Shown piece after piece: positions 241 to 26,585 of a DNA stretch of 64,000 bases. This stretch comes from Macrostomum lignano (lineage: Eukaryota). The stretch spans positions 248,001 to 312,000 of the forward strand of contig NIVC01000090.1 in NCBI GenBank assembly GCA_002269645.1, in the 5' to 3' direction. The notes under the pieces are model-generated. The model had not been told where the DNA came from. It did no database searches and saw only the letters and a list, made by a program, of their open reading frames with translations. The position numbers and the translations under genes were made by a program. Each line of letters opens with the position of its first letter. Position 1 is the stretch's first letter.

Positions 241-1181
241 CTAGGCAAGCTGAATCCGTTCTCCTGACACTATTTTCTTGAGATCGTCCAGCCTCCTCCT
301 GGCGAAGTCGTCCAAGTTGTTGAACCTCTCGAACTCGGACACCGCGGCGTCGACGGCTGCGACGTCGCGAGCGTCGGTAGCCGAAGCCAGCGACCTCACC
401 AGCGAGAGCTCGTCGGTGTCCTTGAACGATCCGCACAGCACAGCCAGCTGCTCCGCCTTCTCGCCGACTCCCGCAGCTCCTGAGCACAGCAGGCACAGAC
501 AGCTCTTGGCCAGGTGGTCCTTGGCTCCGAAGCTCAACAGACTGTGCTGCTCAGCCGACACTCCCAGATCCTCAAACACTGCGGCTGCCTCTGTCAGCCT
601 CCCGCAGTCCGCCGTCAACTCCGCGGCCTTGGCGCGGCTGCCCGCAGCGCTGGCCGGACTGTCCTCGCCGCTCCAGAAGTCCGCCGCTCTCACGTAGGCA
701 CCGATGGCCTCCTCGACTTGCTGAGATGAAGCCAGCAGGTCTCCAGCCTCCTCCAGCTGTCTGGCAGCGATGCTGAACTGGCCCTGCTCTGCGTACATCT
801 CGGCCGCTTGCTGCAGGCACCGCACGGCCTTCGGTCTCGTGTCTGGCAGCTTGCGGTAGCAGTTCGCAGCCTCCGAGTAATTGTTGGCCGCATCGAGCTC
901 GCATCGCCTCTGCTTTGAGAACTGCTCGGCCGCGGCTTCGAATGCCTGCCCAGCTTCGCGCCAGTTTTTAGATATTTTAAGTCTGTTTCCTTTGTCAAGC
1001 AAATGTTCAGATCCTTTGGGCTCTTTGGTGAATGAATAATATAAACCTATGCCAGTTACTGCAGCAACGGACAAAGCCGCCGCCTTTTTAACTTCATGTA
1101 ATTTGTGGTTTCTTAGATTTCCATTGTTCTGAAGTTCGCGAGTTTGGATTTCCGCGGCAGCTTGGACAATTGAACTGAATT
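241..1181 (-). CDS. alpha-SNAP-like protein copy 1 (group A); probable terminal coding exon with a TM-like segment; start codon not in this exon
   Basis: SNAP motifs W.EAG.AF..AA, DAANNYSEAANCYRK, GQFSIAARQ, ADFWSGEDSPASA, LLSFGAKD and LDDF align by eye to alpha-SNAP (NWSAAGNAF, GRFTIAAKH, ADYYKGEES, LLKYSAKD, LDQW). The ORF-track start at 1074 is TTG. The frame stays open upstream to a TTTTAG acceptor at 1182/1181 (phase 1), adding ...HEVKKAAALSVAAVTGIGLYYSF. Stop TAG at 241-243. Confidence 0.8.
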
Positions 1182-1463
1182 CTAAAATACAAACAAAAAT
1201 CGAGTTGAATTTTTAGCTCCAACCTTATTGTTTCCACCTCCAATCTACGGGTAGGAGCTAGTATATCGTTAGCTAATTTTAATCCTGGATATTAGAATAA
1301 CTAGATATGTCTTTCCCAATTAAAGTAGTAAAAAAGTAAAGCGTCTACTCTTTTTTTAGTAGTTTGACTGCGCAAAGTCACATGAATTAATTGTGGCAGC
1401 TAAAACTTCCTTCCCCTTCTCCGACTTTACGGCCCCAGAAGATATAGCGTTAAGAATAAATTA

Positions 1464-1745
1464 AGACGGACGAAACTCAGTCTAGGGGCAGGCTCAATCT
1501 GGCTCAGCCAATGAGAGAGCAGTAGGGAGAGAGGTTTAAGTCAGACGGACGAAACTCAGCCTAGGAGGACAGGCCCAGTCTGGCTCAGCCAATGAGAGAG
1601 CAGTAAGGAGAGAGATTTGAGTCAGACGGACGAAACTCTGCCTAGGGGGACAGGCCCAGTCTGGCTAAGCCAATGAGAGAGCAGTCAGGAGAGATGTTAA
1701 AGTCAGACACAAGCGGGCAAGTGGAAAGCCAGACTGTTTATCGGC
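1464..1745. repeat. three ~80-bp tandem units containing CAGCCAATGAGAG; dispersed repeat also at 23100-23285
   Basis: agacggacgaaactc recurs at 1464, 1543 and 1624. The terminal aagtcagacacaagc..ggaaag..actgttta is shared with the 23100-23285 copy. Confidence 0.85.
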
Positions 1746-1789
1746 ATGGCTGGGTAGCTCGCAATGAGCTACCCTTGGCTGGGTAGCTC

Positions 1790-3746: not shown

Positions 3747-4799
3747 TTAGGTCAGCGGAATTATCTCTCTGGCTGCGATTTTCCTCAACTGGTCCAGCCT
3801 CCTCCTGGCGAAGTCGTCCAAGTTGTTGAACCTCTCGAACTCGGACACCGCGGCGTCGACGGCTGCGACGTCGCGAGCGTCGGTAGCCGAGGCCAGCGAA
3901 CTCACCAGCGAGAGCTCGTCGGTGTCCTTGAACGAGCCGCACAGCCCAGCCAGCTGCTCCGCCTTCTCGCCGACTCCCGCAGCTCCTGAGCACAGCAGGC
4001 ACAGACAGCTCTTGGCCAGGTGGTCCTTGGCTCCGAAGCTCAACAGACTGTGCTGCTCAGCCGATACTCCCAGATCCTCAAACACCGCGGCTGCATCTGC
4101 CAGCCTCCCGCAGTCCGCCATCAACTCTGCGGCCTTGGCGCGGCTGCCCGCAGCGCTGGCCGGACTGTCCTCGCCGCTCCAGAAGTCCGCCGCTCTCAAG
4201 TAGGCATCGATGGCCTCCTTGACTTGCTGAGATGAAGCCAGTAGGTCTCCAGCCTCCTCCAGCTGTCTGGCAGCGCTGGCCGGACTGTCCTCGCCGCTCC
4301 AGAAGTCCGCCGCTCTCAAGTAGGCATCGATGGCCTCCTTGACTTGCTGAGATGAAGCCAGCAGGTCTCCAGCCTCCACCATCTGTCTGGCAGCGATGCT
4401 GAACTGGCCCTGCTCTGCGTACATCTCGGCCGCTTGCTGCAGGCACCGCACGGCCTTCGGTTTTGTGTCTGGCAGCTTGCGGTAGCAGTTCGCAGCCTCC
4501 GAGTAATTGTTGGCCGCATCGAGCTCGCGTCGCCTCTGCTTTGAGAACTGCTCGGCCGCGGCTTCGAATGCCTGTCCAGCTTCGTGCCAGTTTTGATGAA
4601 GCTTCAGCTGGTCGCCCTGCTGCACTGAGTGTTCAGGGTTGGCTTCAGAATTTGTAGAGAGCCGCCGCGGTGTCCATGTTGCAGAGTTACTCAGCTGCTG
4701 GTACTGTGTATCCCCCTGTTGTTGATAGCAACAGCAATATACAGCAACGACAATTGCAATGATTAGAACAACGAGAATGACGAAGACAATGGCAGACAT
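3747..4799 (-). CDS. alpha-SNAP-like protein copy 2 (group A); N-terminal signal-anchor plus CCC motif; internal 40-aa duplication
   Basis: True ATG at 4799 with an in-frame stop just upstream. MSAIVFVILVVLIIAIVVAVYCCCY precedes the SNAP domain. Stop TAA at 3747-3749. Minus-strand AATAAA near 3655-3665. Confidence 0.88.
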   Translation of the reverse strand: MSAIVFVILVVLIIAIVVAVYCCCYQQQGDTQYQQLSNSATWTPRRLSTNSEANPEHSVQQGDQLKLHQNWHEAGQAFEAAAEQFSKQRRRELDAANNYSEAANCYRKLPDTKPKAVRCLQQAAEMYAEQGQFSIAARQMVEAGDLLASSQQVKEAIDAYLRAADFWSGEDSPASAARQLEEAGDLLASSQQVKEAIDAYLRAADFWSGEDSPASAAGSRAKAAELMADCGRLADAAAVFEDLGVSAEQHSLLSFGAKDHLAKSCLCLLCSGAAGVGEKAEQLAGLCGSFKDTDELSLVSSLASATDARDVAAVDAAVSEFERFNNLDDFARRRLDQLRKIAAREIIPLT

Positions 4800-5092
4800 C
4801 GCTGCGTTGGCAGTTTAAAATTGTGTTTCAAATGCTGCTGTATCTCCTGAACGGTAGTATAGTCTGTCCAAGAGCTTTTTAGTGCCTCATAAATTGAAGA
4901 TTATTACTGGTACACGGACTAAAATATTTTAATACAAGTTGTATGGTACGGCAGCTCAGCCTTTTCAAAGCATCCTGGTGCTCTACTAACGTAGAATGAT
5001 AACTTAACACTGTAAAATAATAAGTTGATTACTACCTGACATTGATATAATATCTGTGTGGTCCGTGAGCTATGTGACTTGTAATCTACAGG

Positions 5093-5547
5093 AATCTGTA
5101 TTGTATTGGATCCGTGATTCACTGGAAATGTATTGTATTGGATCCGTGATTCACTGGAAATGTATTGTATGGGATCTGTGATTCACTGGAAATGTATTGT
5201 ATGGGATCCGTGATTCACTGGATATGTATTGTATGGGATCTGTGATTCACTGGAAATGTATTGTATGGGATCTGTGATTCACTGGAAATGTATTGTGTGG
5301 GATCTGTGATTCACTGGAAATGTATTGTGTGGGATCTGTGATTCACTGGATATGTATTGTATGGGATCTGTGATTCACTGGAAATGTATTGTATGGGATC
5401 TGTGATTCACTGGAAATGTATTGTATTGGATCTGTGATTCACTGGAAATGTATTGTGTGGGATCTGTGATTCACTGGAAATGTATTGTGTGGGATCTGTG
5501 ATTCACTGGAAATGTATTGTGTGGGATCTGTGATTCACTGGATATGT
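5093..5547. repeat. 32-bp minisatellite, ~14 copies (gtgattcactggaaatgtattgtatgggatct)
   Basis: gtgattc recurs every 32 bp from 5114 to 5530; no unique spacers. Confidence 0.95.
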
Positions 5548-6547
5548 AATACAGTACATGAGGATGTGGATCTGGGTTCTGTAAACTTTAGAACCTAGGA
5601 GCTCTAGTTGAGAAAATTGCTACCTTGAAAATATTTTTTGAAACTAGAAAAACCTAAAATCCTAAATGAACACTTCAAAATTATATCTTGGCTGAATAGT
5701 TAGTAATTAGCAGACAATAATCCATACACAGAATATTAATAGCTTGCAGGCCAGCAACAATTACTGGTACAACGAACAAATAAGTTCTGCTTCTAAAATT
5801 TTCGACCATTTGAAATGTAAAAACGTTTTGAGAAAGTGAACCATGAGTAACTGGTAAAACAGCCGAAATGTGTTGGCATAGATACTGACAAAAAGCTGAT
5901 AATTCAGCCAAAAATAGCGTATAAAAACACATATAGCAAGTCGAATGAAAATCTAAAATAAAAATTAAGGCAATGATGTTTCCGTTGGCTTAAAAGCAGA
6001 AGTACTTTTATAGAATGTATTTCTGGTCTGATCGTCATCTTCCATTCTGTCCTATTAGATGACGGACTGACCAAGTGCAGGGTAGCCTGGTAGAAGATGA
6101 TAATTCTTAACTGTCCTAAGATCGGCAGCACTGACATGCTTAGTGGATGACGATGTCAGGTCGCTACGAGACTTGCAACAGTAGGAATATCAGTGCCTTT
6201 AAAATTTAGGCAGAAAAAAGTTTTAATTTGTTACGACCACAAAAAAGATAAATATCGGCAGGAATATATAGATTTCTGATAACACAGTGATTTATCGTAA
6301 GTAGTCGTAACAAAAACAGAGGCAGATATACAAACCCAAAAGGTTGCGGTACTCAAGCCACGGGATTCACCCATAGGCCACGCTGTTAACACTGACGTTG
6401 ACGCTCAGTTAAACAAAAAAATTTATTTCATCAGCTGCTTTAGGAGCTATAATAAACTTAGAGGAAACTTTAAGACTCCAAAATCAATACAAAACAAGAA
6501 CATACTAATACTCATAAATATTTCAGGCTCAGTGACAAGCACCGCAA

Positions 6548-7615
6548 CTACTGCAGCTGCACCCCGCCAGAAGCCACAAACTGCCTCAGCTGGTGCAGTC
6601 TCCTCCTGGCGAAGTCGTCCAAGTTGTTGAACTTCTCGAACTCGGACACCGCGGCGTCGACGGCTGCGACGTCGCGAGCGTCGGTAGCCGAAGCCAGCGA
6701 CCTCACCAGCGAGAGCTCGTCGGTGTCCTTGAACGAGCCGCACAGCCCAGCCAGCTGCTCCGCCTTCTCGCCGACTCCCGCAGCTCCTGAGCACAGCAGG
6801 CACAGACAGCTCTTGGCCAGGTGGTCCTTGGCTCCGAAGCTCAACAGACTGTGCTGCTCAGCCGACACTCCCAGATCCTCAAACACCGCGGCTGCCTCTG
6901 TCAGCCTCCCGCAGTCCGCCATCAACTCCGCGGCCTTGGCGCGGCTGCCCGCAGCGCTGGCCGGACTGTCCTCGCCGCTCCAGAAGTCCGCCGCTCTCAC
7001 GTAGACATCGATCGCTTTTCTTTGTTCTTGAGATGCAGCCAGCAGGTCTCCAGCCTCCTCCAGCTGTCTGGCAGCGATGCGGAACTGGCCCTGCTCTGCG
7101 TACATCTCGGCCGCTTGCTGCAGGCACCGCACGGCGTTCGGTCTCGTGTCTGGCAGCTTGCGGTAGCAGTTCGCAGCCTCTGAGTAATTGTTGGCCGCAT
7201 CGAGCTCGCATCGCCTCTGCTTTGAGAACTGCTCGGCCGCGGCTTCGAATGCCTGTCCAGCTTCGTGCCAGTTTTGATGAAGCTTCAGCTGGTTGCCCTG
7301 CTGCAGAAGCTTGGCGGTGTCAGAGGTTCGCTGTAGGGCCGGCTGGGGCTGCGTCAGCCTGCTTGTTTCTTCATCATCTATAGGAAAGCAACACAGACAA
7401 ACGCCTATGGGTAACGTTAAATCTTCAGGTGACGTCATCCTGCTGGCTTCTTCATCTCTAGGAAAGCAACACGGACAAATGCAGCTCCAGCAGCTGTAGC
7501 AGCAGCCTTCAGGTGACGTTGTGCTGGTCTCTTTATCTCTAGGAAAGCAACACGGAAAAATGCAGCTCCAGCAGCTGCAGCACATTTCGCGAATGCAACT
7601 GCAGATGTTTCCCAT
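6548..7615 (-). CDS. alpha-SNAP-like protein copy 3 (group A); predicted N-myristoylated, Cys-rich (palmitoylated) N-terminus
   Basis: The track start at 7624 is TTG. The first ATG is at 7615, 3 nt after a TTGCAG acceptor, giving MGNICSC... followed by three CC(F)P[RI]D.E repeats and the SNAP domain. Stop TAG at 6548-6550. Confidence 0.87.
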   Translation of the reverse strand: MGNICSCIREMCCSCWSCIFPCCFPRDKETSTTSPEGCCYSCWSCICPCCFPRDEEASRMTSPEDLTLPIGVCLCCFPIDDEETSRLTQPQPALQRTSDTAKLLQQGNQLKLHQNWHEAGQAFEAAAEQFSKQRRCELDAANNYSEAANCYRKLPDTRPNAVRCLQQAAEMYAEQGQFRIAARQLEEAGDLLAASQEQRKAIDVYVRAADFWSGEDSPASAAGSRAKAAELMADCGRLTEAAAVFEDLGVSAEQHSLLSFGAKDHLAKSCLCLLCSGAAGVGEKAEQLAGLCGSFKDTDELSLVRSLASATDARDVAAVDAAVSEFEKFNNLDDFARRRLHQLRQFVASGGVQLQ

Positions 7616-7884
7616 TACCTGCAAGTAGAAAACAGTCTTTAATATGTAATTTTTTGTGTGTCTGCTTTTGCCGCTTTAAGTTTTAAGCTAATTCGTGCAA
7701 GGTGGGAAATGCATGAAATATCGTTGGGTATCTATCAGTACAGCTTCAGCAACTGGCCTACTCAGTTACTACAATAAAAAAACAGTAAAAAGATGGGATC
7801 ACAAATAAGTAATTGATAATATAAATAATAATAATATTTTATTTTTTGACTTGGATCTGCATTTTACTATAGGGGAATTTATTG

Positions 7885-8335
7885 GATTGTGAGGTATGGG
7901 ATGGAGATTGTGAGGTATGGGTTGGAGATTTTGAGATATGGGATGGAGATTGTGAGGTATGGGATGGAGATTGTAAGGTATGGGATGGAGATTGTGAGAT
8001 ATGGGATGTAGATTGTGAGATATGAGATGGAGATTGTGAGGTATGGGATGGAGATTGTGAGGTATGGGATGGAGATTGTGAGGTATGGGATGGAGATTGT
8101 GAGGTATGGGATGGAGATTGTGAGGTATGGGATGGAGATTGTGAGATATGGAATGTAGATTGTGAGATATGAGATGGAGATTGTGAGGTATGGGATGGAG
8201 ATTGTGAGGTATGGGATGGAGATTGTGAGGTATGGGATGGAGATTGTAAGGTATGGGATGGAGATTGTGAGGTATGGGATGGAGATTTTTGAGAAATGGG
8301 ATGGAGATTTTGAGATATGGGATGGAGATTGGGAG
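7885..8335. repeat. 21-bp minisatellite, ~21 copies (gagattgtgaggtatgggatg)
   Basis: Directly visible tandem units. Confidence 0.95.
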
Positions 8336-8879
8336 ACATGACTATTCTATTTCCTACATTGATTGTGCAATTTTCCAGTGAATTTGTGTTTTTATAGACT
8401 AGCAAATAAAGTTTTTAAATAGGTCTATATCGCGTGCAGAGAGACGGATTTTAATAACGTTGGTTTTGCGCAAAGCAAAGATCCTTTAACGGTGGAAAAT
8501 TGTACATACAGGTTAAACCAGTAAAGAATTTAATGAATTTGAAAAAAGCAGATCATAATTGACGAAATGGACAACGAAGTGTGGAAAATAAGCAAATAAA
8601 TGAAAACTGAAACCAAAATGTTGCTACCTACAGTAATAGCGGTTAAAAAAAGAGAAAACTCAGTCAATGAAATCATATTTAGTTATTACTGAATAAATAT
8701 GCGCAGAAACTATAACTAATTCGGGTATGTTTAACGTAAAATAAAATAAAAGCTATTGTTAAAATTGACCTACTTTAAAAAGCTTGTACAGGGACTTCTA
8801 GAAATATTACCAGGTGGACTGGAAGCTTGAAATAATGCTACGCCTTTAACGAAATCCTCTCACAACCAGCGCTGAGACA

Positions 8880-9152
8880 ATTCTGCGCACTCCGCTGACT
8901 CTTCACCACACACAAGCGCGCCAATACTGTACTCAGGCACGGCACTCATACACACGCTCACACAGGGTGTACATCGGCCCTGACTTTCTAATCGTCAGGC
9001 ATGTGCAGTCTCTGTGCCTTGGGGGTTGGCCCTCATGGCTGTGAATCGCACGACAACCTGCATTTTCGTGCACACAAGCCCCAAATGAATGTGTTTGCGT
9101 ACTCAATCGAACCAGGGGTCGTGGGCGTTTATTACCGCTGAGAAGCTCCGCC
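8880..9152 (-). mobile_element. degenerate tRNA-derived SINE-like element, same family as 11640-12010
   Basis: Shares the core ctgtgccttgggggttggccctca and flanks with 11730-11880. B-box-like GGTTCGATT on the minus strand near 9105-9113. Confidence 0.6.
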
Positions 9153-10325
9153 TTAGCACCTTCACTTGGGGATCAAAGGACTCACTTGGTCTAGCCAAAT
9201 CCAAAACACTGCTTGGGGCGGTAATTTTCAGATATAAGAAATAACAGTAGCCACCACATTGGCGTCAACATGGAGCCATGTTGCCTTCTAGCTTCCAGTC
9301 CAACTCTCTGCTGCTACTTCCAGAAGTCCTTGGCTAGTAAATGATTTGAAAAGCAAGCCATACAAATGGATAGAGCGCTATATTAGACAGACCATGTAAA
9401 CAGTAACTAGAGAAGACACTGGGACTAAAAGCAAATTTTAAGACGCAAGAAAAACAAAAGTACCGGCTGTTAAATAGTAAAGCATTGCTAAATTGACACA
9501 GATTGATTATTTTCCTGTTTGATAATACCAGTACGAGCGTAATTTTCAATTTTTGCTAGTTCTCTAATGTCCAGTCTAGATGTCCATGTTCAAGTCAATT
9601 TGCACTTTTTCTGTTCTCACGCCCTATTTTTTCCTACACGGGTGTCCGCTGGTGGTAAAAACGATGGTGGTAGGGGCAGAGAGGAGAGAGATAAGCGTTG
9701 AGTTAAGAACCGCGGCAGCCAATCAGAATGGAGCGAGGAGAGAGACTAAAATATATGTCTACACAAGGAGAGAGAGAATTTGAGTGTTCCTGCACTAAAG
9801 CAGTTTAAGCCAAACAGACTGAAATAGAAAGTCGGCCTAAAATAAACAAACAAACTTTATAATCGGGTGTTGTGTTGGTTAATCTAAGATTGGGGCGACT
9901 AACAAATTCCAGATTAGCATAATAAACTTTGCAATAGAAATTGGACTCATAACTTTGCGAAAAATACCGTTTCGAGGAAAATGAAATAAACAATTACATG
10001 AAAAAATTACATTGCACAAAACATATGTTGGTAAATTCAAACCACCGTATAATTCAAATGATAAATTGATTTTGTCGACAGCAACATATGGAAGAAGATT
10101 CCTACAATTTCCACGAAGTTGGCATTATTGCTGAGCCTTGTACTTCGCAGATTTATAAACCAGTAGAATACTTATAATAAACTGCAACAGCAGAATCATA
10201 CAATAGAAAGCTGGAGATTTCTCGCCTTATCATCATTATGGCTTTGGCATGCAAACTTAAACCTCCAAGACATAGAAGGATTGAGTCGAGTCCAATGCCG
10301 AATATATTAATACTCAGGCTGCTAC

Positions 10326-11411
10326 TTACAGTAACTGCACACTGTCACCAGTAGCTAAAAACTGTCTCAGCTGGTCCAGCCTCCTCCTGGCGAAGTCGTC
10401 CAAGTTGTTGAACCTCTCGAACTCGGACACCGCGGCGTCGACGGCTGCGACGTCGCGAGCGTCGGTAGCCGAAGCCAGCGACCTCACCAGCGAGAGCTCG
10501 TCGGTGTCCTTGAACGAGCCGCACAGCACAGCCAGCTGCTCCGCCTTCTCGCCGACTCCCGCAGCTCCTGAGCACAGCAGGCACAGACAGCTCTTGGCCA
10601 GGTGGTCCTTGGCTCCGAAGCTCAACAGACTGTGCTGCTCAGCCGACACTCCCAGATCCTCAAACACTGCGGCTGCCTCTGTCAGCCTCCCGCAGTCCGC
10701 CATCAACTCCGCGGCCTTGGCGCGGCTGCCCGCAGCGCTGGCCGGACTGTCCTGGCCGCTCCAGAAGTCCGCCGCTCTCAAGTAGGCATCGATGGCGTTT
10801 CTTTGATCTTGTGATGCAGCCAGCAGGTCTCCAGCCTCCTCCAGCTGTCTGGCAGCGATGCGGAACTGGCCCTGCTCTGCGTACATCTCGGCCGCTTGCT
10901 GCAGGCACTGCACGGCCTTCGGTCTCGTGTCTGGCAGCTTGCGGTAGCAGTTCGCAGCCTCCGAGTAATTGTTGGCCGCATCGAGCTCGCGTCTTCTCTG
11001 CTTCGAGAAGCGATCTGCAACAGTCTCAAACTTTTTGCCAGCTTCAAGCCAGTTTTTATCACGTTTGTTCCTGTTGCCATCGTCGATTAATCGCTGCTGC
11101 GATCCGTGCGTTTGACGCTTTCTAAACAGCAGAAAGTACAGTACCAGCAGCAGCAATACTACCAAGATGCACAGAAACCCGACAAAGATATAGGCTGTAT
11201 GTAATTTCGCTGGTGGCACAGTTGGCTGAGCTGTTGGAGCTGATGTAGTCGTGTCGATAGTAGTTGTGTTTGAATAGGACGGATTTGACGTCGTTAGGAC
11301 ACTCGTCGTTGGTCCGGTCGTACTGTTGGCATCAGCAGCAGCGGCACTTTCCACTGCTGCCATTGCGGTACTATTTGAACTTTTGATTTCGCTGCTATTC
11401 GAAGTCTCCAT
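10326..11411 (-). CDS. alpha-SNAP-like protein copy 4 (group A); receptor-like: Ser/Thr/Pro-rich stalk, TM helix, cytosolic SNAP domain
   Basis: The track start at 11486 is TTG; the first ATG is at 11411. The frame is open back to a TTTTTTCAG acceptor at 11471/11470 (phase 1), so an upstream coding exon is possible. Stalk has NSS/NST/NTT sequons. TM is AYIFVGFLCILVVLLLLVLYFLLF followed by RKR. Stop TAA at 10326-10328. Confidence 0.87.
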   Translation of the reverse strand: METSNSSEIKSSNSTAMAAVESAAAADANSTTGPTTSVLTTSNPSYSNTTTIDTTTSAPTAQPTVPPAKLHTAYIFVGFLCILVVLLLLVLYFLLFRKRQTHGSQQRLIDDGNRNKRDKNWLEAGKKFETVADRFSKQRRRELDAANNYSEAANCYRKLPDTRPKAVQCLQQAAEMYAEQGQFRIAARQLEEAGDLLAASQDQRNAIDAYLRAADFWSGQDSPASAAGSRAKAAELMADCGRLTEAAAVFEDLGVSAEQHSLLSFGAKDHLAKSCLCLLCSGAAGVGEKAEQLAVLCGSFKDTDELSLVRSLASATDARDVAAVDAAVSEFERFNNLDDFARRRLDQLRQFLATGDSVQLL

Positions 11412-11639
11412 TCTTGATTCTTGCGAGTTATTAAACAGATGTTCTTTAGTATGCTTTGGGTGAAAATGCACTGAAAAAAGGGTCAATAGTGATATTGAAA
11501 ATAGCGTTAAAATGAAGTTGGAACATAAAGATATTATCTGTTCCTAAGCTCTTTAAACATGGAACGGGAACATATTCTAGTACTTTGTTTCTTTGATTAA
11601 CACTGGCAGCTTGTAGGAAGTGAGGCAGACGTTACGTTA

Positions 11640-12010: not shown

Positions 12011-12702
12011 CAACCAATTGCGTAAATTTTTCTGGCGAAAATTCAAACCTGCAGATATGTTTTGCAACTTAGATGAAACGAGCACAGTATATCGAGGCAT
12101 TTAAACAACTTTTGGGTCAACTTTTGAATGTAGAAGATTAGAACAACAGTTTCTTTTTTAAACTATTAATTTCTACAACGATTGAGACAATTCTTTGCGT
12201 ACGGCTAAAATGAAAAAACCGACAAATTTTTTGCTAGGAAGCAAGCAATCTAAGAAATAGCACAATAATTAGCTACATGGCAACGATCGATGCTAGTTTT
12301 CTTTGTCGGGCTCAAGACGGAATAGGCATGATGCGGCACTTAAATTTCACAGCAGCATAACCAGCTACAGCTTAAAATGATTCAATAAAGCAAGCAGACT
12401 GAAAAAATATGCAAGTGAAATTACGTACCTTTTGAATTCTGGAGACAAAACAAGCAAGCTACCGATATATCACAATGCTATACAACTTGTAAGGATGATG
12501 TTCACAGCTTTCTACTAATTCGGTCTTATATAAGTAACGCCACTAATTAAATATAGAGTAAAAAATCACTGGCATAAAATTGACAGTCTATAACAAACAA
12601 GGATATTAGAACCTACGTTACCTTGAAATAACTATTCAACTTTCGTATGCACACTAAAATGTGTTTCTCAATAAAATTTGAATCGCACAAAACCCTTTCC
12701 AA

Positions 12703-16608: not shown

Positions 16609-18291
16609 CTAAGAAAGCTCAACCGTTGAGCTCTGCACGCTTTTACGAGCATCTGTTATCCTGCGCATGTCGAACTCGTCCAATTTTTTGGGAAATTTGA
16701 ACCTCTGGTACTCGGCCACCGCCTTGTCGAAAGCTTCGACACTGATGGCTGCGGCAAGACCTTTGACCAGAGCGAACTCGTCACTTCTAGCGAATGACTC
16801 GCTCTTGGCTGCCAGTTCATCGGCACGTTTTGAGCAGGCTTTAAGATCCATTGCAAGCTGGCACAGACACGACTTGAGCATGTGATCATTGGCTCCGAAC
16901 TGAAGCAGACCGTGGCCTTGAGCCTCTTCACCCAGCTTTGCGAATTCGTTGGCAGCATCACGAAATTGGCCCGAATCGCCAAGCAAAATGGCCAGTTTGG
17001 TTCTACAGCTTGCGGCACTGGCGACACTGTTCTCAGCACTGAAGTGCTCTGCTGCCTTCTGGTAGCGGTTTATGGCTTCTTGCATTGAATTCGCATCGCT
17101 TACGAACTCAAAGCTGCTGAGCTCAGGATCGGAACTGTTCTGAGTATTCCAAGCGGGAAATTTCCTTGCCAATTCCTCAGTCAGCTCACCGGCTGTCTCC
17201 ATCAGTCTGGCTGCAATGCTGAACTGGCCGACTTCGCAGTAAAGTTGAGCTGCTCGCTCAAAGCAGTGAACGGCTTTGGGCTTGTCCGTCTTGCAAAAAC
17301 AGTTGGCAGCACTTTGATAGCAATCCGCCTGCTCGTAAATTGTGCTGCCACCTCGCTGAGAAAATTTCTCTGCAGCTTCTGAGAATGCGTCTCCGGCTTC
17401 GCTCCACTTCTTTTCCAGTTTGAATTTGTTGGCTTTCTGCATCAGCGACTCAGTTGTGTCTTTGTACCAAGTGAAATCAGTTGAAAAATTACTAAACCAT
17501 TTAGATGATTGGTGCCTATCACTTAGATTAGTAGCTTTCGAATCTTCAGTCACTGGTTGCAGACCCTGCTGACCTTCATCGTTTGTTGATTTCTGCCACG
17601 ACAACTTAAAATTATTAGAGCGCCACGTAGAAGCACTACTCAAAACGGACTTTGTTTGCTGAATATAAACTTCAGCCTTTGTTGTTTGATCGTCAGCCTT
17701 TATTGTCCGATAGTCAGATTTTATTGTCTGTTCGTCAGCCTTTGTTGTCTGATCGTCAGCCTTTGTTGTCTGATCGTCAGCCTGTGTTGTTTGATCGTCA
17801 GCCTTTGATGTTTGATCGTCAGCCTGCATCAGCGACTTGGAAGTATCCGCACGAGGTGTCAAAGCTGTACTAACGATTGCAGAGATGTTCCAATTTAAAG
17901 GATTAAAATTACGCAATGGGCCTTCAGGTGTCCTACTAGTGTCTTCATGGCTAGATTCGCGCGAGATTACTCGTAGATTTATGTTTGAACGTTCGCCGCG
18001 TTGCCCTTCTAACGAAGGCGTTCTTCCGCGTAAATGTTGAAAAGCGGCCCATATCAGTCCTTCCAATAGTACTACTACTATTACTAAACTAATGGAGGAA
18101 AAGCTTGCTGCTTCTACTGCTGCTATTACTACTGCTTTTATTACGTCCTTTAGTAAATCTACTACTAACAGCAGTATAGTGAATAATGTGAGTATTGTAA
18201 ATAAATACGGTTTCAATTTCCGCAGCAACCAGTACGCGAACTGTAGATCCAATCGAAACAGCCTCGGAACTCGATCAAATAATGATGGCAT
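16609..18291 (-). CDS. alpha-SNAP-like protein copy 7 (divergent group B); two hydrophobic segments, ADDQTTK repeats, SNAP domain
   Basis: ATG at 18291, 6 nt after a TTTTTTTCAG acceptor. SNAP motifs KANKFKLEKKWSEAGDAF, GQFSIAAR, LLQFGANDH, FARSDEF and LDEF. Stop TAG at 16609-16611. Confidence 0.87.
   Translation of the reverse strand: MPSLFDRVPRLFRLDLQFAYWLLRKLKPYLFTILTLFTILLLVVDLLKDVIKAVVIAAVEAASFSSISLVIVVVLLEGLIWAAFQHLRGRTPSLEGQRGERSNINLRVISRESSHEDTSRTPEGPLRNFNPLNWNISAIVSTALTPRADTSKSLMQADDQTSKADDQTTQADDQTTKADDQTTKADEQTIKSDYRTIKADDQTTKAEVYIQQTKSVLSSASTWRSNNFKLSWQKSTNDEGQQGLQPVTEDSKATNLSDRHQSSKWFSNFSTDFTWYKDTTESLMQKANKFKLEKKWSEAGDAFSEAAEKFSQRGGSTIYEQADCYQSAANCFCKTDKPKAVHCFERAAQLYCEVGQFSIAARLMETAGELTEELARKFPAWNTQNSSDPELSSFEFVSDANSMQEAINRYQKAAEHFSAENSVASAASCRTKLAILLGDSGQFRDAANEFAKLGEEAQGHGLLQFGANDHMLKSCLCQLAMDLKACSKRADELAAKSESFARSDEFALVKGLAAAISVEAFDKAVAEYQRFKFPKKLDEFDMRRITDARKSVQSSTVELS
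17673..17826 (-). repeat. coding 21-bp repeat (~7 x ADDQTTK) in copy 7
   Basis: cagcctttgttgtctgatcgt units, in frame with the ORF. Confidence 0.9.
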
Positions 18292-20580: not shown

Positions 20581-21310
20581 TGGGCACCCCTGTCTCTTGG
20601 TGGCACCCCTGTCTCTTGGTGGCACCCCTGTCTCTTGGTGTCACCCCTGTCTCTTCGTGGCACCCCTGTCTCTTGGTGGCACCCCGGTCTCTTGGTGGCA
20701 CCCCTGTCTCTTGGTGTCACCCCTGTCTCTTGGTGTCACCCCTGTCTCTTGGTGCCACCCCTGTCTCTAGGTGGCACCCCTGTCTCTTGGTGGCACCCCT
20801 GTCTTGGTGCCACCCCTGTCTCTTGGTGGCACCCCTGTCTCTTGGTGTCACTCCTGTCTGTCTCTTGGTGGCACCCCTGTCTCTTGGTGGCACCCCTGTC
20901 TCTTGGTGGCACCCCTGTCTCTTGGTGTCACTCCTGTCTGTCTCTTGGTGGCACCCCTGTCTCTTGGTGTCACTCCTGTCTGTCTCTTGGTGTCACCCCT
21001 GTCTCTTGGTGTCACCCCTGTCTCTTGGTGCCACCCCTGTCTCTTGGTGGCACCCCTGTCTCTTGGTGGCACCCCTGTCTTGGTGCCACCCCTGTCTCTT
21101 GGTGCCACCCCTGTCTCTTGGTGGCACCCCTGTCTCTTGGTGGCACCCCTGTCTTGGTGCCATTCCTGTCTCTTGGTGGCAACCCTGTCTCTTGGTGTCA
21201 CTCCTGTCTATCTCTTGGTGGCACCCCTGTCTCTTGGTGGGCGCCCCTGTCTTTCGGTTGGCGCCCCTGTCTCTTGGTGGGCGCCCCTGTCTTTCGGTTG
21301 GCGCTCCTGT
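20581..21310. repeat. 19-bp minisatellite (gcacccctgtctcttggtg) with variant units
   Basis: gcacccc recurs at 20584, 20603, 20622 and onward. Confidence 0.95.
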
Positions 21311-21506
21311 CTCTTTGTAGGAGACCGTCTGGATGAGTTTCTGGTTTCCTAAAAACACTCTAATGTCTGAAAAACTTTAACAAAACAGCCTTGAATATGA
21401 ACAAAAAACAATCCATCTTGAACTCTCTTTACTCGATGTTAAACAACTATGATAAATATCAGACAAGCAAATTCAAGTTCCAATATCTTCCAAAGAAAAT
21501 TAAAGT

Positions 21507-22583
21507 TCAGGTCAGCGGAATTATCTCTCTGGATGCGATTTTCCTCAGCTGGTCCAGCCTCCTCCTGGCGAAGTCGTCCAAGTTGTTGAACCTCTCGAAC
21601 TCCGACACCGCGGCGTCGACGGCTGCGACGTCGCGAGCGTCGGTAGCCGAAGCCAGCGACCTCACCAGCGAGAGCTCGTCGGTGTCCTTGAACGAGCCGC
21701 ACAGCCCAGCCAGCTGCTCCGTCTTCTCGCCGACTCCCGCAGCTCCTGAGCACAGCAGGCACAGACAGCTCTTGGCCAGGTGGTCCTTGGCTCCGAAGCT
21801 CAACAGACTGTGCTGCTCAGCCGACACTCCCAGATCCTCAAACTCCCGGGCTGCCTCTGCCAGCCTCCCGCAGTCCGCCATCAACTCCGCGGCCTTGGCG
21901 CGGCTGCCCGCAGCGCTGGCCGGACTGTCCTCGCCGCTCCAGAAGTCCGCCGCTCTCAAGTAGGCACCGATGGCCTCCTCGACTTGCTGAGACGCAGCCA
22001 GCAGGTCTCCAGCCTCCTCCAGCTGTCTGGCAGCGATGCTGAACTGGCCCTGCTCTGCGTACATCTCGGCCGCTTGCTGCAGGCACCGCACGGCCTTCGG
22101 TCTCGTGTCTGGCAGCTTGCGGTAGCAGTTCGCAGCCTCCGAGTAATTGTTGGCCGCATCGAGCTCGCGTCGCCTCTGCTTTGAGAACTGCTCGGCCGCG
22201 GATTCGAATTCCTGCCCAGCTTCGCACCAGTTTTGATGAAGCTTCAGCTGGTTTCCTCGGTTTACACATTTTTCTGCTTGCTTTCTAGACCTAGTAAAAA
22301 ACTTTCGAACGCAGCGGCAGAGGTTCTTTGACGCAGAGTACAATCTTTCAACGGTGATTATATTGGTAACGGTATTTTTATGTGTGTTTATTAGAGTCTT
22401 TACGTTTTGGAGCCCAAGATAAATCAAAACTATAATTCCAACGAAAAATACGAGCAATAACATATACTCGTAGTTGTCCATGATAGGAGCAAAGGACGAA
22501 CCGGCGTCGGAAACATCGTTGGAAACATTGTTGCCCTGGATCTTTAAATTAGTCAGGTTGGATCTGCTTTCGGCTGGCGGCAT
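21507..22583 (-). CDS. alpha-SNAP-like protein copy 8 (group A); short ectodomain plus TM
   Basis: ATG at 22583 with an in-frame stop upstream and an acceptor at 22621/22620. Sequons NLT and NVS precede YMLLLVFFVGIIVLIYLGL and the SNAP domain. Stop TGA at 21507-21509. Confidence 0.88.
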   Translation of the reverse strand: MPPAESRSNLTNLKIQGNNVSNDVSDAGSSFAPIMDNYEYMLLLVFFVGIIVLIYLGLQNVKTLINTHKNTVTNIITVERLYSASKNLCRCVRKFFTRSRKQAEKCVNRGNQLKLHQNWCEAGQEFESAAEQFSKQRRRELDAANNYSEAANCYRKLPDTRPKAVRCLQQAAEMYAEQGQFSIAARQLEEAGDLLAASQQVEEAIGAYLRAADFWSGEDSPASAAGSRAKAAELMADCGRLAEAAREFEDLGVSAEQHSLLSFGAKDHLAKSCLCLLCSGAAGVGEKTEQLAGLCGSFKDTDELSLVRSLASATDARDVAAVDAAVSEFERFNNLDDFARRRLDQLRKIASREIIPLT

Positions 22584-23030: not shown

Positions 23031-23099
23031 TCGTATTTGGGTTGAGGATGGAAATCACTTCCCCCCCCTATTCCACAGACGTTTGAACACCCCTCCTGA

Positions 23100-23285: not shown

Positions 23286-24254
23286 GCCTGACTGAGGGGG
23301 GGGGGCGCCACCCCTTTGCTCTCTTGCTCGCTTGTTTAGTTTAAAAGTCTAAACAAGCTTATCAAGAAACGAGAAAAGAAACGAAAAGAACGGAGTCTTA
23401 AACGTTAGGGATCATGTTTCTTCACGATTCACCATTCTAAGTATGCCTCATAGTTAGTTAATCAATCAGTGAAACAAAAAACTAATAACACACAAGACAA
23501 AATCTTAGTCTGAAAATTGTAACATTAAGCATATATTTAACCTCATTCTAGCGTTTGTTCAACAACATATCGTTATTTTCATCAACGAATATTATTTTTA
23601 CAATACATGAAAATTTCTTTGATAAATCTGAGTTTTGGAGAAGAGCCAAAATAAAAACAGGGCAAAAAACAAAACAAAAAATTTATTAGAACAGCATGAA
23701 AAAAACTCCAAAAGTATGAATTGAAAATTACAACAGACGATAACAACTTCTAACTGCTGTTTTAACTTTAACAGTTAAAAGTGTGACCAAACTTTATATT
23801 ACCGTGCAGTTCGGTTAAATTTTTAGTCAAGAAAAAACATTCAAGGTTATCGCAATATTTAAGTATTTATATACAAATAGCAAATAAATAACAAAACAAT
23901 CACTTGTTTTGACTGTTGTTTTGATATGGCATCATCATTAGGCTGATATAGGAAGTTTATGAAAATTAATACCAATTGATCCCCCTCTCTATAGTAACAA
24001 AATATTTTAGAGCCAATGTACAAAACACTAAAAAGTTACTAGGGGCTTGGGCAATTAAATTATTTAATTCAAAATACACAGATAAAAAACTTATAAAACA
24101 AGTACCAAGAGCATCCTTTTAATTTTGTGTATGTTAACGTCTTCTGTATGCTATTATTGTTATAACATAATTAGTGTTATTCATCACCACACAACAGTTT
24201 CGCCAAACAAGAAATTGTAAGTCGGGACGGATTAAAACAGTCAACTTCTTCTCT

Positions 24255-26585
24255 CTAAACAAGCTCAACCGTCGACGGCGTCGAGCTCCGATAATTTTTA
24301 CGAGCATCTTGTATCCGGCGCATGTCGAACTCGTCCAAATTGTTGAATCTCTCGTACTCGGCCACCGCCTTGTCGAAATCATCGACACTGTTGGCTGCGG
24401 CAAGACCTTTGACCAGAGCGAACTCGTCACTTCTAGCGAATGACTCGCTCTTGGCTGCCAGTTCATCGGCCTGTTTTGAGCAGGCTTTGGGATTCATTGC
24501 AAGGCACAGGCACGACTTGAGCATGTGATCATTGGCTCCGAACTGAAGCAGATCGTGGCCTTGAGCCTCTTCACCCAGCTTTGCGAATTCGTTGGCAGCA
24601 TCACGGAATTGGCCCGAATCGCCAAGCAAAATGGCCAGTTTGGTTCTACAGCTTGCGGCACTGGCGACACTGTTCTCAGCACTGAAGTAGTCTGCTGCCT
24701 TCTGGTAGCGGTTTATGGCTTCTTGCATTGAATTCGCATCGCTTACTAACTCAAAGCTGCTGAGCTCAGGATCGGAACTGTTCTGAGTACTCAAAGCGGG
24801 ACGTTTCCTTGCCAATTCCTCAGTCAGCTCACCGGCTGTCTCCATCAGTCTGGCCGCAATGCTGAACTGGCCGACTTCGCAGTAAAGTTGAGCTGCTTGC
24901 TCAAAGCAGTGAACGGCTTTGGATTTGTCCGTCTTGCAAAAACAGTTGGCAGCATTTTGATAGCAATCCGCCTGCTCGTGAATTGTGTTGCCACCTTGAT
25001 GACGAAATTTCTCTGCAGCTTGGGAGAATGCGTCTCCGGCTTCGCTCCACTTCTTTTCCAGTTTGAATTTGTTCGCTTTCTGCATCAGCGACTCAGCAGC
25101 ATCCGCATCAGGAAGTGTAGCCACGGCTGCATCTTTGAGCCATCTCCAACCAATTGAAATATTACTCGACCATGAACTTGATGATTGATGTTTACCACAT
25201 TGACTCTGTTCAGTGGCATTCGAATCTTCACTCACTGTTTGCTGACTCATCTGACCTTCGCTCTTTAGATTCAGATCTTCAGTCACTGGTTGCTGACTCA
25301 GCTGACCTTTAGCCTTTGTTGTCGGATCTTCAGTCACTGGTTGCTGACCCAGCTGACTTGTAGCCTTTGTTGTCGGATCTTCAGTCACTGGTTGCTGACC
25401 CAGCTGACTTGTAGCCTTTGTTGTCGGATCTTCAGTCACTGGTTGCTGACTCAGCTGACCTTTAGCCTTTGTTGTCGGATCTTCAGTCACTGGTTGCTGA
25501 CCCAGCTGACTTGTAGCCTTTGTTGTCGGATCTTCAGTCACTGGTTGCTGACCCAGCTGACTTGTAGCCTTTGTTGTCGGATCTTCAGTCACTGGTTGCT
25601 GACCAAGCTGACTTGTAGCCTTTGTTGTCGGATCTTCAGTCACTGGTTGCTGACCCATCTGACCTTTAGCCTTTGTTTCCGGATCTTCAGTCACTGGTTG
25701 CTGACCCTGCTGACCTCCAGCACTTGCCGGATTTTCAGTCACTGGTTGCTGACCAAGCTGACTTGTAGCCTTTGTTGCCGGATCTTCACTCACTGGTTTC
25801 TGACCCAGCTGACCTTTAGCCTTTGTTGTCGGATCTTCAGTCACTGGTTGCTGACCCAGCTGACCTTTAGCCTTTGCCGGATCTTCAGTCACTGGTTGCT
25901 GACCCTGCTGACCTCCAGCACTTGCCGGATTTTCAGTCACTGGTTTCTGACCCAGCTGACCTTTAGCCTTTGTTGTCGGATCTTCAGTCACTTGTTTCTG
26001 ACCCAGCTGACCTTTAGCCTTTGCCGGATCTTCAGTCACTGGTTGCTGACCCAGCTGACCTTTAGCCTTTGTTGTCGGATCTTCAGTCACTGGTTGCTGA
26101 CCCTGCTGACCTCCAGCACTTGCCGGATCTTCAGTCACTGGTTGCTGACCCAGCTGACCTTTAGCCTTTGTTGTCGGATCTTCAGTCACTGGTTGGTGAC
26201 CCAGCTGACCTTTAGCCTTTGTTGTCGGATCTTCAGTCACTGGTTGCTGACCCAGCTGACCTTTAGCCTTTGCCGGATCTTCAGTCACTGGTTGCTGACC
26301 CAGCTGACCTTTAGCCTTTGTTGCCGGATCTTCAGTCACTGGTTGCTGGCCCAGCTGACCTTTAGCCTTTGTTGCCGGATCTTCAGTCACTAGTTGCTGA
26401 CCCAGCTGACCTTTAGCCTTTGCCGGATCTTCAGTCACTGGTTGCTGACCCTGCTGACCTTTAGCCTTTGCCGGATCTTCAGTCACTGGTTGCTGACCCA
26501 GCTGACCTTTAGCCTTTGTTGTGGGATCTTCAGTCTTTGTTGTCGGACCTTTACTTCGAATTGAATATGATATTTCAGCATTCAT
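24255..26585 (-). CDS. alpha-SNAP-like protein copy 9 (group B); ~25-26 x 16/17-aa GQLGQQPVTEDP(T)TKAK repeats; no TM in the ORF
   Basis: ATG at 26585, 4 nt after a CATTCAG acceptor. The SNAP domain is close to that of copy 7. Stop TAG at 24255-24257. Confidence 0.85.
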   Translation of the reverse strand: MNAEISYSIRSKGPTTKTEDPTTKAKGQLGQQPVTEDPAKAKGQQGQQPVTEDPAKAKGQLGQQLVTEDPATKAKGQLGQQPVTEDPATKAKGQLGQQPVTEDPAKAKGQLGQQPVTEDPTTKAKGQLGHQPVTEDPTTKAKGQLGQQPVTEDPASAGGQQGQQPVTEDPTTKAKGQLGQQPVTEDPAKAKGQLGQKQVTEDPTTKAKGQLGQKPVTENPASAGGQQGQQPVTEDPAKAKGQLGQQPVTEDPTTKAKGQLGQKPVSEDPATKATSQLGQQPVTENPASAGGQQGQQPVTEDPETKAKGQMGQQPVTEDPTTKATSQLGQQPVTEDPTTKATSQLGQQPVTEDPTTKATSQLGQQPVTEDPTTKAKGQLSQQPVTEDPTTKATSQLGQQPVTEDPTTKATSQLGQQPVTEDPTTKAKGQLSQQPVTEDLNLKSEGQMSQQTVSEDSNATEQSQCGKHQSSSSWSSNISIGWRWLKDAAVATLPDADAAESLMQKANKFKLEKKWSEAGDAFSQAAEKFRHQGGNTIHEQADCYQNAANCFCKTDKSKAVHCFEQAAQLYCEVGQFSIAARLMETAGELTEELARKRPALSTQNSSDPELSSFELVSDANSMQEAINRYQKAADYFSAENSVASAASCRTKLAILLGDSGQFRDAANEFAKLGEEAQGHDLLQFGANDHMLKSCLCLAMNPKACSKQADELAAKSESFARSDEFALVKGLAAANSVDDFDKAVAEYERFNNLDEFDMRRIQDARKNYRSSTPSTVELV
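25220..26540 (-). repeat. coding 48/51-bp tandem repeat in copy 9
   Basis: Units of 16 or 17 codons keep the frame open over ~1.3 kb. Confidence 0.92.

Follow-up and report, generated by a model that had tools for sequence, protein, structure and literature searches.

What is the function of nine neighboring genes in a flatworm genome, each of which ends in a SNAP-type domain and begins with a segment largely unrelated to those of the other eight? The genes lie in a stretch of 64,000 nucleotides (the window) that comprises bases 248001-312000 of contig NIVC01000090.1 (411,559 bp) in assembly GCA_002269645.1 of Macrostomum lignano, a free-living flatworm. Nine long open reading frames (ORFs), all on the minus strand, span positions 241-26585 of the window, exactly where an earlier reading made from the letters alone (the sequence-only reading) had placed them. 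A tblastn search of the window using two of the copies as queries gives the same nine SNAP modules, with none past 26585. These genes form a lineage-specific, transcribed tandem family, and we propose, with a probability that we put at about one half, that its products would be tethered to membranes, face the cytosol and bind SNARE bundles with an altered coupling to NSF, thereby acting as local modulators.

The domain in all nine copies is a real SNAP of the α type, since its matches to SNAP profiles, sequences and folds are strong while those to TPR models stay below cut-off. Every copy matches the Pfam SNAP family (PF14938), with E values from 1e-45 to 8e-55 and scores of 157-187 bits (cut-off 25). 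The matches to the TPR models TPR_12, TPR_2, TPR_11 and TPR_9 all lie under their own cut-offs. A phmmer search of the PDB sequences returns α-SNAP at 2e-32, Sec17 at 1.4e-15 and γ-SNAP at 2.2e-6, so that the sequence is nearer to α- than to γ-SNAP. Copy 5 was modelled at full length by AlphaFold2 on an alignment of 63 sequences, the one copy for which this was done; the predicted local distance difference test score is 95-98 over residues 85-333. In the model residues 1-48 are disordered, a single long helix formed by residues 50-80 includes the transmembrane (TM) segment, and the first SNAP helix starts from residue 85. On comparison of this model with the PDB using Foldseek, the top 29 structures are Sec17 or α-SNAP chains from 20S complexes, with TM-scores of 0.74-0.83 (normalized to the target) and root mean square deviations that are mostly 2-3 Å, rising to 6.8 Å. 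These are followed by γ-SNAP and then HAP40, with generic TPR proteins at 0.2-0.45. No HAP40-type Pfam match was found in the nine copies at E ≤ 0.01, the only matches being to SNAP and, weakly, to TPR. The sequence-only reading had described nine same-strand ORFs ending in a SNAP-type domain, and had proposed a profile search that might reveal a generic TPR protein instead. The description is borne out, and a generic TPR identity is excluded by the bit scores, the sub-threshold TPR matches and the low TM-scores of TPR structures.

The modules fall into two subfamilies. Subfamily A contains copies 1-6 and 8, with module identities of 86-91%. Subfamily B contains copies 7 and 9, which are ~45% identical to A and have an insertion of 26 residues. 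The identity of the family to α-SNAP is ~25-29%.

All nine ORFs are intact, with lengths of 277-776 codons. The first-pass ORF list had used bacterial start codons, and starts were therefore re-derived using ATG and splice sites; the bacterial-style starts of copies 1, 3 and 4 were dropped, while the listed ATG is the start in copies 2, 5, 6, 7, 8 and 9. Hydrophobic segments were scored by their mean Kyte-Doolittle value over 19 residues, with a threshold of 1.6. Strong segments are present in six of the nine copies (2 and 4-8), copies 1 and 3 have motifs of the lipidation type only, and copy 9 has no anchor. At least six copies, and probably eight, are thus predicted to have a membrane anchor of their own at the place where the N-terminal end of α-SNAP would be. 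Of the eight anchors claimed by the sequence-only reading the six strong ones stand, whereas those of copies 1 and 3 are reduced to motifs, and the TM-like segment noted in copy 1 lies below threshold.

Copies 4, 5 and 8 share one type of organization. Copy 4 was listed at 10326-11486 and runs from the ATG at 11411 to 10326 (361 amino acids, starting METSNSS; SNAP 1.1e-47; C-terminus VQLL). A Ser/Thr-rich stalk of ~70 amino acids with four N-x-S/T sequons precedes a TM segment at residues 73-96 (11195-11124; Kyte-Doolittle 3.26), which is followed by RKRQ, with the module beginning ~10 residues further on. A Pfam match of copy 4 to the sialomucin MGC-24, considered as a donor of its anchor module, was below cut-off and probably compositional, and was rejected. 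Copy 5 (12703-13725, 340 amino acids, C-terminus VQLQ) has an N-terminal segment with three sequons, a TM segment at residues 53-74 (13569-13504; 2.14), QVKK, and the module from about residue 85. In copy 8 (21507-22583, 358 amino acids, C-terminus IPLT) there are two sequons, a TM segment at residues 40-58 (22466-22410; 2.79) and a basic linker of ~45 amino acids before the module. In all three the sequons lie upstream of the TM segment and none is found between it and the module. The residues that follow the TM segment are basic (RKRQ, QVKK and QNVK...RKFFTRSRK respectively) and those preceding it are neutral or acidic. Because of the position of the sequons and this positive-inside pattern of charge, we predict an N-out/C-in topology for copies 4, 5 and 8, with the SNAP module in the cytosol. 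The sequence-only reading had reached the same topology from the sequons, which are present as it described, and the charge pattern agrees.

The remaining hydrophobic segments differ from these and from each other. In copy 2 (3747-4799, 350 amino acids, C-terminus IPLT) the TM segment is at residues 3-21 (4793-4737; Kyte-Doolittle 3.53), followed by CCC (4736-4728), a linker of ~45 amino acids and the module. The module contains an in-frame tandem duplication of 120 bp (4150-4395, 97% identical), giving one additional helical hairpin of 40 residues. Copy 6 (14851-15810, 319 amino acids, C-terminus VQLQ) has two adjacent hydrophobic segments at residues 15-27 and 32-54 (15768-15649; 1.97 and 1.75) that form a putative hairpin with a YWLLKKLK motif, and the module follows. 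Copy 7 (16609-18291, 560 amino acids; Pfam SNAP 1.6e-47; C-terminus VELS) also has two segments, at residues 28-47 and 50-84 (18210-18040; 2.45 and 2.39), located downstream of a YWLLRKLK motif. These are separated from a B-type module with the insertion of 26 amino acids by a hydrophilic linker of ~190 amino acids that includes 7-residue ADDQTTK repeats (17823-17674). Copies 6 and 7 belong to different subfamilies, and they have a weak N-terminal motif in common, M-x-S-F-I...YWLL(K/R)KLK, which hints that whole modules may have been exchanged between them. A search of an index of 5.8 billion proteins found no homolog of the copy 7 N-terminus and anchor elsewhere.

Copies 1, 3 and 9 lack a strong hydrophobic segment. 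The listed ORF of copy 1 (241-1074) lacks an in-frame ATG upstream of the domain; mapping of the NCBI model BOX15_Mlig021756g2 (P0003) by tblastn shows that this is a gene of two exons at 241-2603. Exon 1 (2603-2474) begins MGQSHSKPPGE, an N-myristoylation-type motif in which MGQSHSK fits the pattern G-x-x-x-S, and continues with a Trp-rich hydrophobic stretch. The splice sites of the intron (2473-1182) read from the sequence are canonical GT..AG. Exon 2 (1181-241) encodes a weak hydrophobic segment, AAALSVAAVTGIGLYYSF, and then the SNAP module (Pfam SNAP 2.5e-52; C-terminus IQLA). The hydrophobic maximum of the protein is sub-threshold, at 1.36. Copy 3 was listed at 6548-7624, and from the ATG at 7615 it has 355 amino acids (6548-7615; C-terminus VQLQ). 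It has no TM segment, starts MGNICSC, a sequence of the myristoylation/palmitoylation type, and has 18 Cys in three strings among its first 104 amino acids. Copy 9 (24255-26585, 776 amino acids; Pfam SNAP 1.2e-45; C-terminus VELV) has ~26 copies of a 17-amino-acid (51-nt) repeat, GQLGQQPVTEDPTTKAK (25220-26535), and then a B-type module. No upstream exon encoding an anchor or hairpin was found for it in the window.

The anchors take the place of a specific part of α-SNAP. The Pfam match starts at positions 23-42 of the 282 positions of the profile in eight copies, and at position 16 in copy 7. When the copies are aligned with mammalian and tapeworm α-SNAP, none has a counterpart of helix 1 or of the apolar loop (F27/F28 and their neighbors), the loop positions being occupied either by gaps or by residues of the anchor. 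The hydrophobic segment is ~10-15 residues from the first SNAP helix in copies 4, 5 and 6, with linkers of ~45 residues in copies 2 and 8 and ~190 in copy 7. In the SNARE/SNAP/NSF complex the N-terminal end of SNAP is the end that is proximal to the membrane, and so an anchored architecture of this kind makes mechanistic sense.

A second, colinear array is present at the end of contig NIVC01000685.1 (L003). It has at least eight copies, with counterparts of copies 9, 8, 7, 6, 5 and 4 together with one more copy that resembles copy 8 and a fragment that resembles copy 9. Comparison of the arrays reveals that the anchors are individually conserved between them. Substitutions amount to 1.1-2.8% in the intergenic DNA, 0.4-1.3% in the anchors of copies 4 and 5, and 2.8-3.9% in the modules, where the non-synonymous and synonymous proportions are about equal. 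The N-terminus of copy 4 is conserved in its counterpart, and the anchor of copy 8 differs at three positions in 103 codons.

Within the window the pattern of similarity is restricted to the modules. In a self-comparison the A copies are 95-97% similar at the DNA level over ~700 bp that lie within the SNAP module. The 5′ limit of this tract is near the second SNAP helix and the 3′ limit is at or just before the stop codon in most pairs; for a few pairs the similarity continues for up to ~75 bp beyond it. The N-termini, untranslated regions and intergenic DNA of the A copies do not align. This upholds the statement of the sequence-only reading that the N-termini are largely unrelated, the weak motif of copies 6 and 7 being the sole relation at the protein level. 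With flanks and N-termini that cannot be aligned, and modules that are 95-97% identical mosaics, simple duplication of whole genes in tandem was rejected as the source of the similarity.

The mosaics are caused by gene conversion over short tracts among the A paralogs. The identity of the nearest neighbor shifts from one part of the module to another: over the middle third that of copy 4 is the L003 counterpart of copy 5, and vice versa. For the quartet made up of copies 4 and 5 and their two counterparts, 47 informative sites support orthology and 13 support the crossed pairing, and all 13 of the latter lie within 29 nt, in a patch that reads either QQVEEAI or QDQRNAI. It is because of this conversion that the modules look uniform and younger than the array. 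Variation among the twelve A modules is concentrated in the first two helices (i.e. the membrane-proximal end), in the QQVEEAI/QDQRNAI patch and in the C-terminal tail. Between A and B the ratio of non-synonymous to synonymous substitution rates (dN/dS) is 0.23, with dS saturated.

There is evidence for transcription of the family, and for inclusion of the N-terminal segments. The Mlig_3_7 annotation of M. lignano was built from RNA-seq (PMC5730564). The RNA-seq-derived gene models P0001, P0002, P0003 and P0158 all contain the N-termini. Within the window there are models for copy 1 (with the anchor exon included), copy 5 (exactly the 340-amino-acid ORF) and copy 6 (P0002), and the counterpart of copy 8 in the second array has the transcript model PAA78487.1 (P0158), in which TM segment and module are in one ORF. 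The sequence-only reading had allowed that splicing might remove the hydrophobic N-termini, or that the copies might not be transcribed. The anchors are retained in the models of copies 1, 5 and 6 and of the second-array copy 8, and transcription is indicated for copies 1, 5 and 6, copies 7, 8 and 9 being those without a model. There is moreover no internal Met in any copy from which an intact SNAP module could start, the first Met of the module in subfamily A being deep within the domain, and every copy has an upstream in-frame ATG (that of copy 1 being in exon 1). Any protein containing the whole module must therefore include the N-terminal extension.

Two gene models pass from one copy to another. 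A 419-amino-acid NCBI model spans 3747-11468, from the N-terminus of copy 4 to the stop codon of copy 2, and a model of 13.4 kb in the second array (L003 10001-23371) likewise jumps between neighboring copies. The 419 amino acids correspond to the 5′-extended ORF of copy 4 plus the 40-residue duplication of copy 2, minus one residue. Splicing of variable exons was considered as the source of these models and set aside; they are most likely chimeras of transcript mapping across modules that are 95-97% identical. A search by gene ID of the supplements of four M. lignano papers found no entry on the expression of Mlig021756 or Mlig023934. Another gene, Mlig015185g1, is expressed in one M. lignano data set, in which a further paralog is also listed.

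Mlig015185 is the closest relative of the family. A profile search of 1.84 billion representative proteins gave only two clusters belonging to this locus, at ~490 bits, followed by M. lignano Mlig015185 at 160 bits and then by ordinary α-SNAPs of ~290 residues. The family was not found outside M. lignano: a word-indexed search returned only the proteins of the locus itself, in the profile search no further cluster scored more than 160 bits, and a scan of metagenome contigs was negative. A search for relatives of Mlig015185 in the index of 5.8 billion proteins found only Mlig015185. This protein (PAA56338.1 and relatives) is soluble, has 287 amino acids and the C-terminus RLA, and is encoded by an intronless gene of 864 bp on another contig. 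Helix 1 and the loop are absent from it too, an insertion is located where subfamily B has its own, and the penultimate residue is a leucine. In a neighbor-joining tree A, B and Mlig015185 form a clade on a long branch with a bootstrap of 100, within which A and B group together at 86. This clade is confined to M. lignano in current databases. A newer annotation (supplement of PMC12896417) contains a SNAP-like protein, mikado.scaf249G20, that is 44.6% identical to Mlig015185g2 and matches none of the nine copies, and so the divergent clade has at least one more member.

The simplest history that we infer begins with a founder that was probably an intronless, 5′-truncated (retro)copy of α-SNAP from which the first helix and the apolar membrane loop were absent. 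The soluble Mlig015185 would be a surviving relative of this stage. After divergence, tandem expansion would have been accompanied by the gain of new 5′ coding sequence that supplied the membrane anchors.

We examined the residues by which α-SNAP contacts its partners, taking the sites from Huang et al. 2019 (PMC6457932) and the review of Zhao et al. 2015 (PMC11532144). The hydrophobic SNARE contacts L197 and L198 are kept in all copies, and Y200 is replaced by F in all. The basic contacts are less well preserved. K122 is R in all copies, K203 is kept in A and is N in B, K163 is G or S, R239 is D, and R116 is Q in all copies. K94 and K167, reportedly identified as sites in α-SNAP by Marz et al. 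2003, are also kept in the alignment of the family. Substitution of R116 by alanine in α-SNAP leaves 2% of its disassembly activity (PMC6457932). The acidic residues to which NSF docks have largely gone: of the set D217, E249, E252 and E253 no more than one acidic residue is kept, and corresponding to D290-D293 there are 0-1 acidic residues in the last 12, compared with four in α-SNAP. With both of these patches and R116, K163 and R239 lost, the proteins are unlikely to be ordinary NSF adaptors. The penultimate leucine, which in α-SNAP is required to stimulate the ATPase activity of NSF (cited from the literature on protist α-SNAP), occurs without exception in A and B, in the L003 copies and in Mlig015185, and this in a tail that varies more than any other part of the module.

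These observations can be brought together in the following way. The SNAP solenoid is fused to a predicted anchor at the end that faces the membrane in the 20S complex, and this anchor may be a single TM segment with a short glycosylatable ectodomain, a TM segment with Cys residues clustered behind it, a hairpin of hydrophobic segments, or a motif of the myristoyl/Cys-string type. In the reading that we prefer the resident proteins would bind SNARE bundles through the hydrophobic contacts that have been kept; the geometry, these contacts and the invariant activating leucine are the reasons for which we infer that they act on SNAREs. Retention of the penultimate leucine with loss of the acidic docking sites for the NSF N-domain would leave coupling to NSF altered, and probably weak or specialized; such a change is expected from the absence of both acidic patches and of three basic SNARE contacts. 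The role would then be local modulation of SNARE assembly or disassembly on particular membranes or in particular cell types, rather than general recycling. A more specific version, which we put forward only tentatively and consider less likely than not, is that these are SNAPs that naturally reside in membranes, a permanent anchor having taken over from the transient contact made by the apolar loop. Different anchors would address different membranes or cell types, where the proteins would stabilize SNARE complexes or disassemble them with NSF through an interface that has co-evolved. If this were true, the control of SNARE recycling in an animal would have a layer, addressed to organelles, that was not known before, and the family would be the natural equivalent of an experiment with TM-anchored Sec17 that is discussed below.

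A number of points weigh against the proposal of membrane-tethered, cytosol-facing SNARE binders. With R116, K163, R239 and both NSF-docking patches lost the proteins may bind neither SNAREs nor NSF, and the LLxF motif may have been retained for structural reasons and not as a contact. The lipidation of copies 1 and 3 is a prediction at the level of motifs, and the topology of the TM segments was derived from simple rules (hydropathy, sequons and flanking charge) rather than from a dedicated predictor. There is no gene call for copies 7 and 8 in the stretch of the contig record that was examined, and the exact product of copy 9 is not on record. Among the A copies dN/dS is 0.4-0.8, and it is ~1 between the 'orthologous' modules of the two arrays; these elevated values fit conversion between diverged paralogs, and equally a relaxation of constraint. 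Lastly, all three B-type copies in L003 (6370-8258, 13567-15743 and 20685-21497) have disrupted frames, unlike the intact pair in the window; the disruption could be either real decay or insertion/deletion errors in a long-read assembly.

The loss of contacts could mean that the SNAP fold has been recruited as a scaffold for a non-SNARE partner at membranes, as in HAP40, so that the link to SNAREs and NSF is historical. The electrostatic contact sets for both partners are mostly gone, the branch is very long with ~25-29% identity to α-SNAP, and the position of HAP40 as the next structural neighbor after the SNAPs indicates that the fold can be re-used. We nevertheless regard this as rather doubtful. 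It does not account for a penultimate leucine that is invariant in A, B and Mlig015185 within the most variable tail, nor for the retention of L197, L198, F200, K122R, K167, K94 and (in A) K203, and an anchor at the membrane-proximal N-terminal end is the geometry expected for binding a SNARE bundle. At the opposite extreme the proteins could be fully competent NSF adaptors specific to compartments, each recruiting NSF and disassembling cis-SNARE complexes on the membrane chosen by its anchor, with tethering or a co-evolved NSF compensating for the lost charges. A TM-anchored Sec17 works in vitro (PMC5540461), α-SNAP paralogs with distinct locations are known in protists (PMC6172762, PMC12019078), and soybean NSF-RAN07 is an NSF that co-evolves with atypical SNAPs (PMC6712407); the leucine and the hydrophobic contacts are kept here. 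Yet both acidic sets are lost (0-1 acidic residues against four at the C-terminus), and the family has R116Q, K163G/S and R239D, where R116A alone reduces disassembly by α-SNAP to 2% (PMC6457932). Full competence is thus unlikely.

NSF-defective SNAPs might instead act as poisons or decoys in the manner of soybean Rhg1, blocking trafficking in a dominant-negative way in defence or conflict, with copy number setting the dose. The tandem copies and atypical C-termini at the NSF site resemble the resistance-type α-SNAPs of Rhg1 (PMC6712407), and the dN/dS of the modules is elevated. The Rhg1 proteins are otherwise ordinary soluble α-SNAPs, however, whereas here the whole protein is divergent, and the repeat unit of Rhg1 is a block of 31 kb containing four genes (PMC6712407). 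The charges at the SNARE contacts that a SNARE-trapping poison would need are eroded too, and the anchors are individually conserved, all of which makes this explanation very unlikely. Least probable in our view is that the genes are non-functional recent duplicates, left to decay after segmental duplication in a genome that is rich in repeats and partly polyploid, with anchors that are chance hydrophobic extensions. The M. lignano DV1 assembly does contain 180 Mb of duplicated blocks at ≥95% identity (PMC5730564), the B-type copies of the second array are disrupted, some copies are without gene models, and the N-termini have no homologs anywhere. Against this, none of the nine ORFs in the window is interrupted, over lengths of 277-776 codons, the A-B dN/dS is 0.23 at saturated dS, every copy has an upstream in-frame ATG and none has an internal start for an intact domain. 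In addition six of the nine extensions have Kyte-Doolittle means of 1.75-3.5, the anchors are better conserved between the arrays than the intergenic DNA, and transcripts exist according to the RNA-seq-based models.

The SNAP family itself is known, α-SNAP being in textbook accounts a soluble adaptor through which the proteins of membrane fusion are recycled, and what is new here is the membrane-anchored architecture and the distinctive modular evolution. Animals are described as having a single α-SNAP (PMC6172762, PMC12019078, PMC6712407), and the soluble, low-copy character of that protein does not apply to nine copies in the window and at least eight in L003. The array proteins resemble α-SNAP/Sec17 in Pfam family and fold, in the α-type sequence, and in L197, L198, Y200 (as F), K122 (as R), K167, K94 and the penultimate leucine. 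They differ in their low identity, in the lack of helix 1 and the apolar loop, in the loss of R116, K163, R239 and both acidic patches, and in being membrane-anchored rather than soluble. The genes are moreover multi-copy, tandem and intronless, except that copy 1 has its intron between the anchor exon and the module exon.

The nearest precedent for the architecture is an engineered one. The apolar loop of Sec17 contains F21/M22, the counterpart of F27/F28 in α-SNAP, and a Sec17 with an N-terminal TM anchor is active and bypasses the loop (Song et al. 2017, eLife, PMC5540461). The resemblance lies in a TM segment at the N-terminus of SNAP, the anchor of the construct standing in for membrane binding by the loop, and in the short distance of ~10-15 residues between the anchor and the first SNAP helix in copies 4, 5 (TM) and 6 (hairpin). 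The construct differs in retaining full-length Sec17 with all NSF and SNARE contacts, whereas the array proteins have lost helix 1 and the loop and their contacts have diverged. The sequence-only reading had raised the possibility that TM-SNAP fusions were already documented; in the literature searched, the coverage of which was incomplete, no natural SNAP anchored by a TM segment or a lipid came to light, the engineered TM-Sec17 being the only example. With its membrane-proximal end hard-wired, the family offers a natural test of the purpose of the apolar loop and of membrane-specific action of SNAPs.

Other multi-copy or repurposed SNAPs are less similar. The sequence-only reading had pointed to soybean Rhg1 as a precedent. 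This is apt only for tandem copy number and for the atypical C-terminal NSF-binding site; the array proteins are anchored and only ~25-29% identical to α-SNAP overall. The Rhg1 α-SNAPs are by contrast soluble and near-canonical, have no membrane anchors, belong to a 31-kb repeat of four genes and have a role in defence; the resistance-type proteins are impaired in their interaction with NSF and are cytotoxic in a dosage-dependent manner (PMC6712407). Giardia and Leishmania have several α-SNAP paralogs with distinct subcellular distributions and a conserved C-terminal leucine (PMC6172762, PMC12019078). These differ in being soluble, with no TM or lipid anchors, and in number (2-3 copies, with no tandem array); the word 'transmembrane' appears nowhere in the Leishmania α-SNAP paper. 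Mlig015185, the sister in the divergent clade, shares the intronless structure, the absence of helix 1 and the loop, the insertion at the B site and the penultimate leucine, and differs in being soluble, unanchored and outside the array, with even fewer of the basic SNARE contacts kept. HAP40, the partner of huntingtin, is similar as a SNAP-like solenoid that has been re-used as a scaffold. It is soluble, and it ranks below all α-SNAP/Sec17 and γ-SNAP chains in comparison with the copy 5 model. With the charges that dock NSF lost but the activating leucine retained, one may also ask whether SNAP folds can act on SNAREs without NSF, or with a modified form of it. Modular evolution, too, is clearly illustrated by the array, in which a constant module maintained by gene conversion is combined with freely diverging orphan N-terminal targeting modules. 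The availability of transgenesis in M. lignano makes both localization and function directly testable.

Some other features of the locus are recorded here. The gene annotated next after copy 1, just outside the start of the window (NIVC01000090.1 locus L001 17581-22372), codes for a protease of the calpain type (Peptidase_C2, Calpain_III), and therefore the SNAP array ends at copy 1 on that side. Minisatellites with units of 23, 32, 21 and 19 nt are found in the intron of copy 1 and the spacers of the array (1787-2203, 5097-5548, 7885-8335 and 20583-21315 respectively), and these are the reason for the long spurious ORFs on both strands of the array. Antisense ORFs of 170-190 amino acids on the plus strand overlie SNAP modules at 12647-13159, 14789-15307 and 21391-21963. 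They are similar to one another because the underlying modules are similar, and are best read as by-products of an Ala/Ser-rich coding strand. In the second array a repeat region at L003 ~1.1-6.4 kb, upstream of the first disrupted B-type copy, has expanded to ~5 kb.

The window contains no match to Rfam families or tRNAs anywhere in its 64 kb. Beyond the array there are two satellite arrays, one with at least 12 copies of a 636-bp unit at ~99-100% identity (31745-39529) and another with seven copies of a 623-bp unit that is ~74-87% identical to the first (42981-47505). Each is preceded by a segment that is repeated ~11.2 kb apart at 98-99% identity (29279-30925 and 40508-42153), and so a unit of flank plus satellite has apparently been duplicated in tandem. 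The ORFs at 30144-30572 and 41372-41929 have a common N-terminus. A 232-amino-acid ORF on the plus strand at 48774-49472 has an RNase H domain (2e-10) and is probably a piece of another retroelement. At 53480-56887, also on the plus strand and in AT-rich surroundings, there is an intact ORF of 1135 amino acids from a retrotransposon that lacks long terminal repeats (i.e. of the long interspersed nuclear element type), with an endonuclease/exonuclease/phosphatase domain and a reverse transcriptase (Pfam RVT_1 4e-30). Finally, a tract of low complexity at 60001-62150 has a GC skew of 0.70 and an AT skew of 0.60, and gives rise to Ser/Leu-rich pseudo-ORFs on the minus strand.

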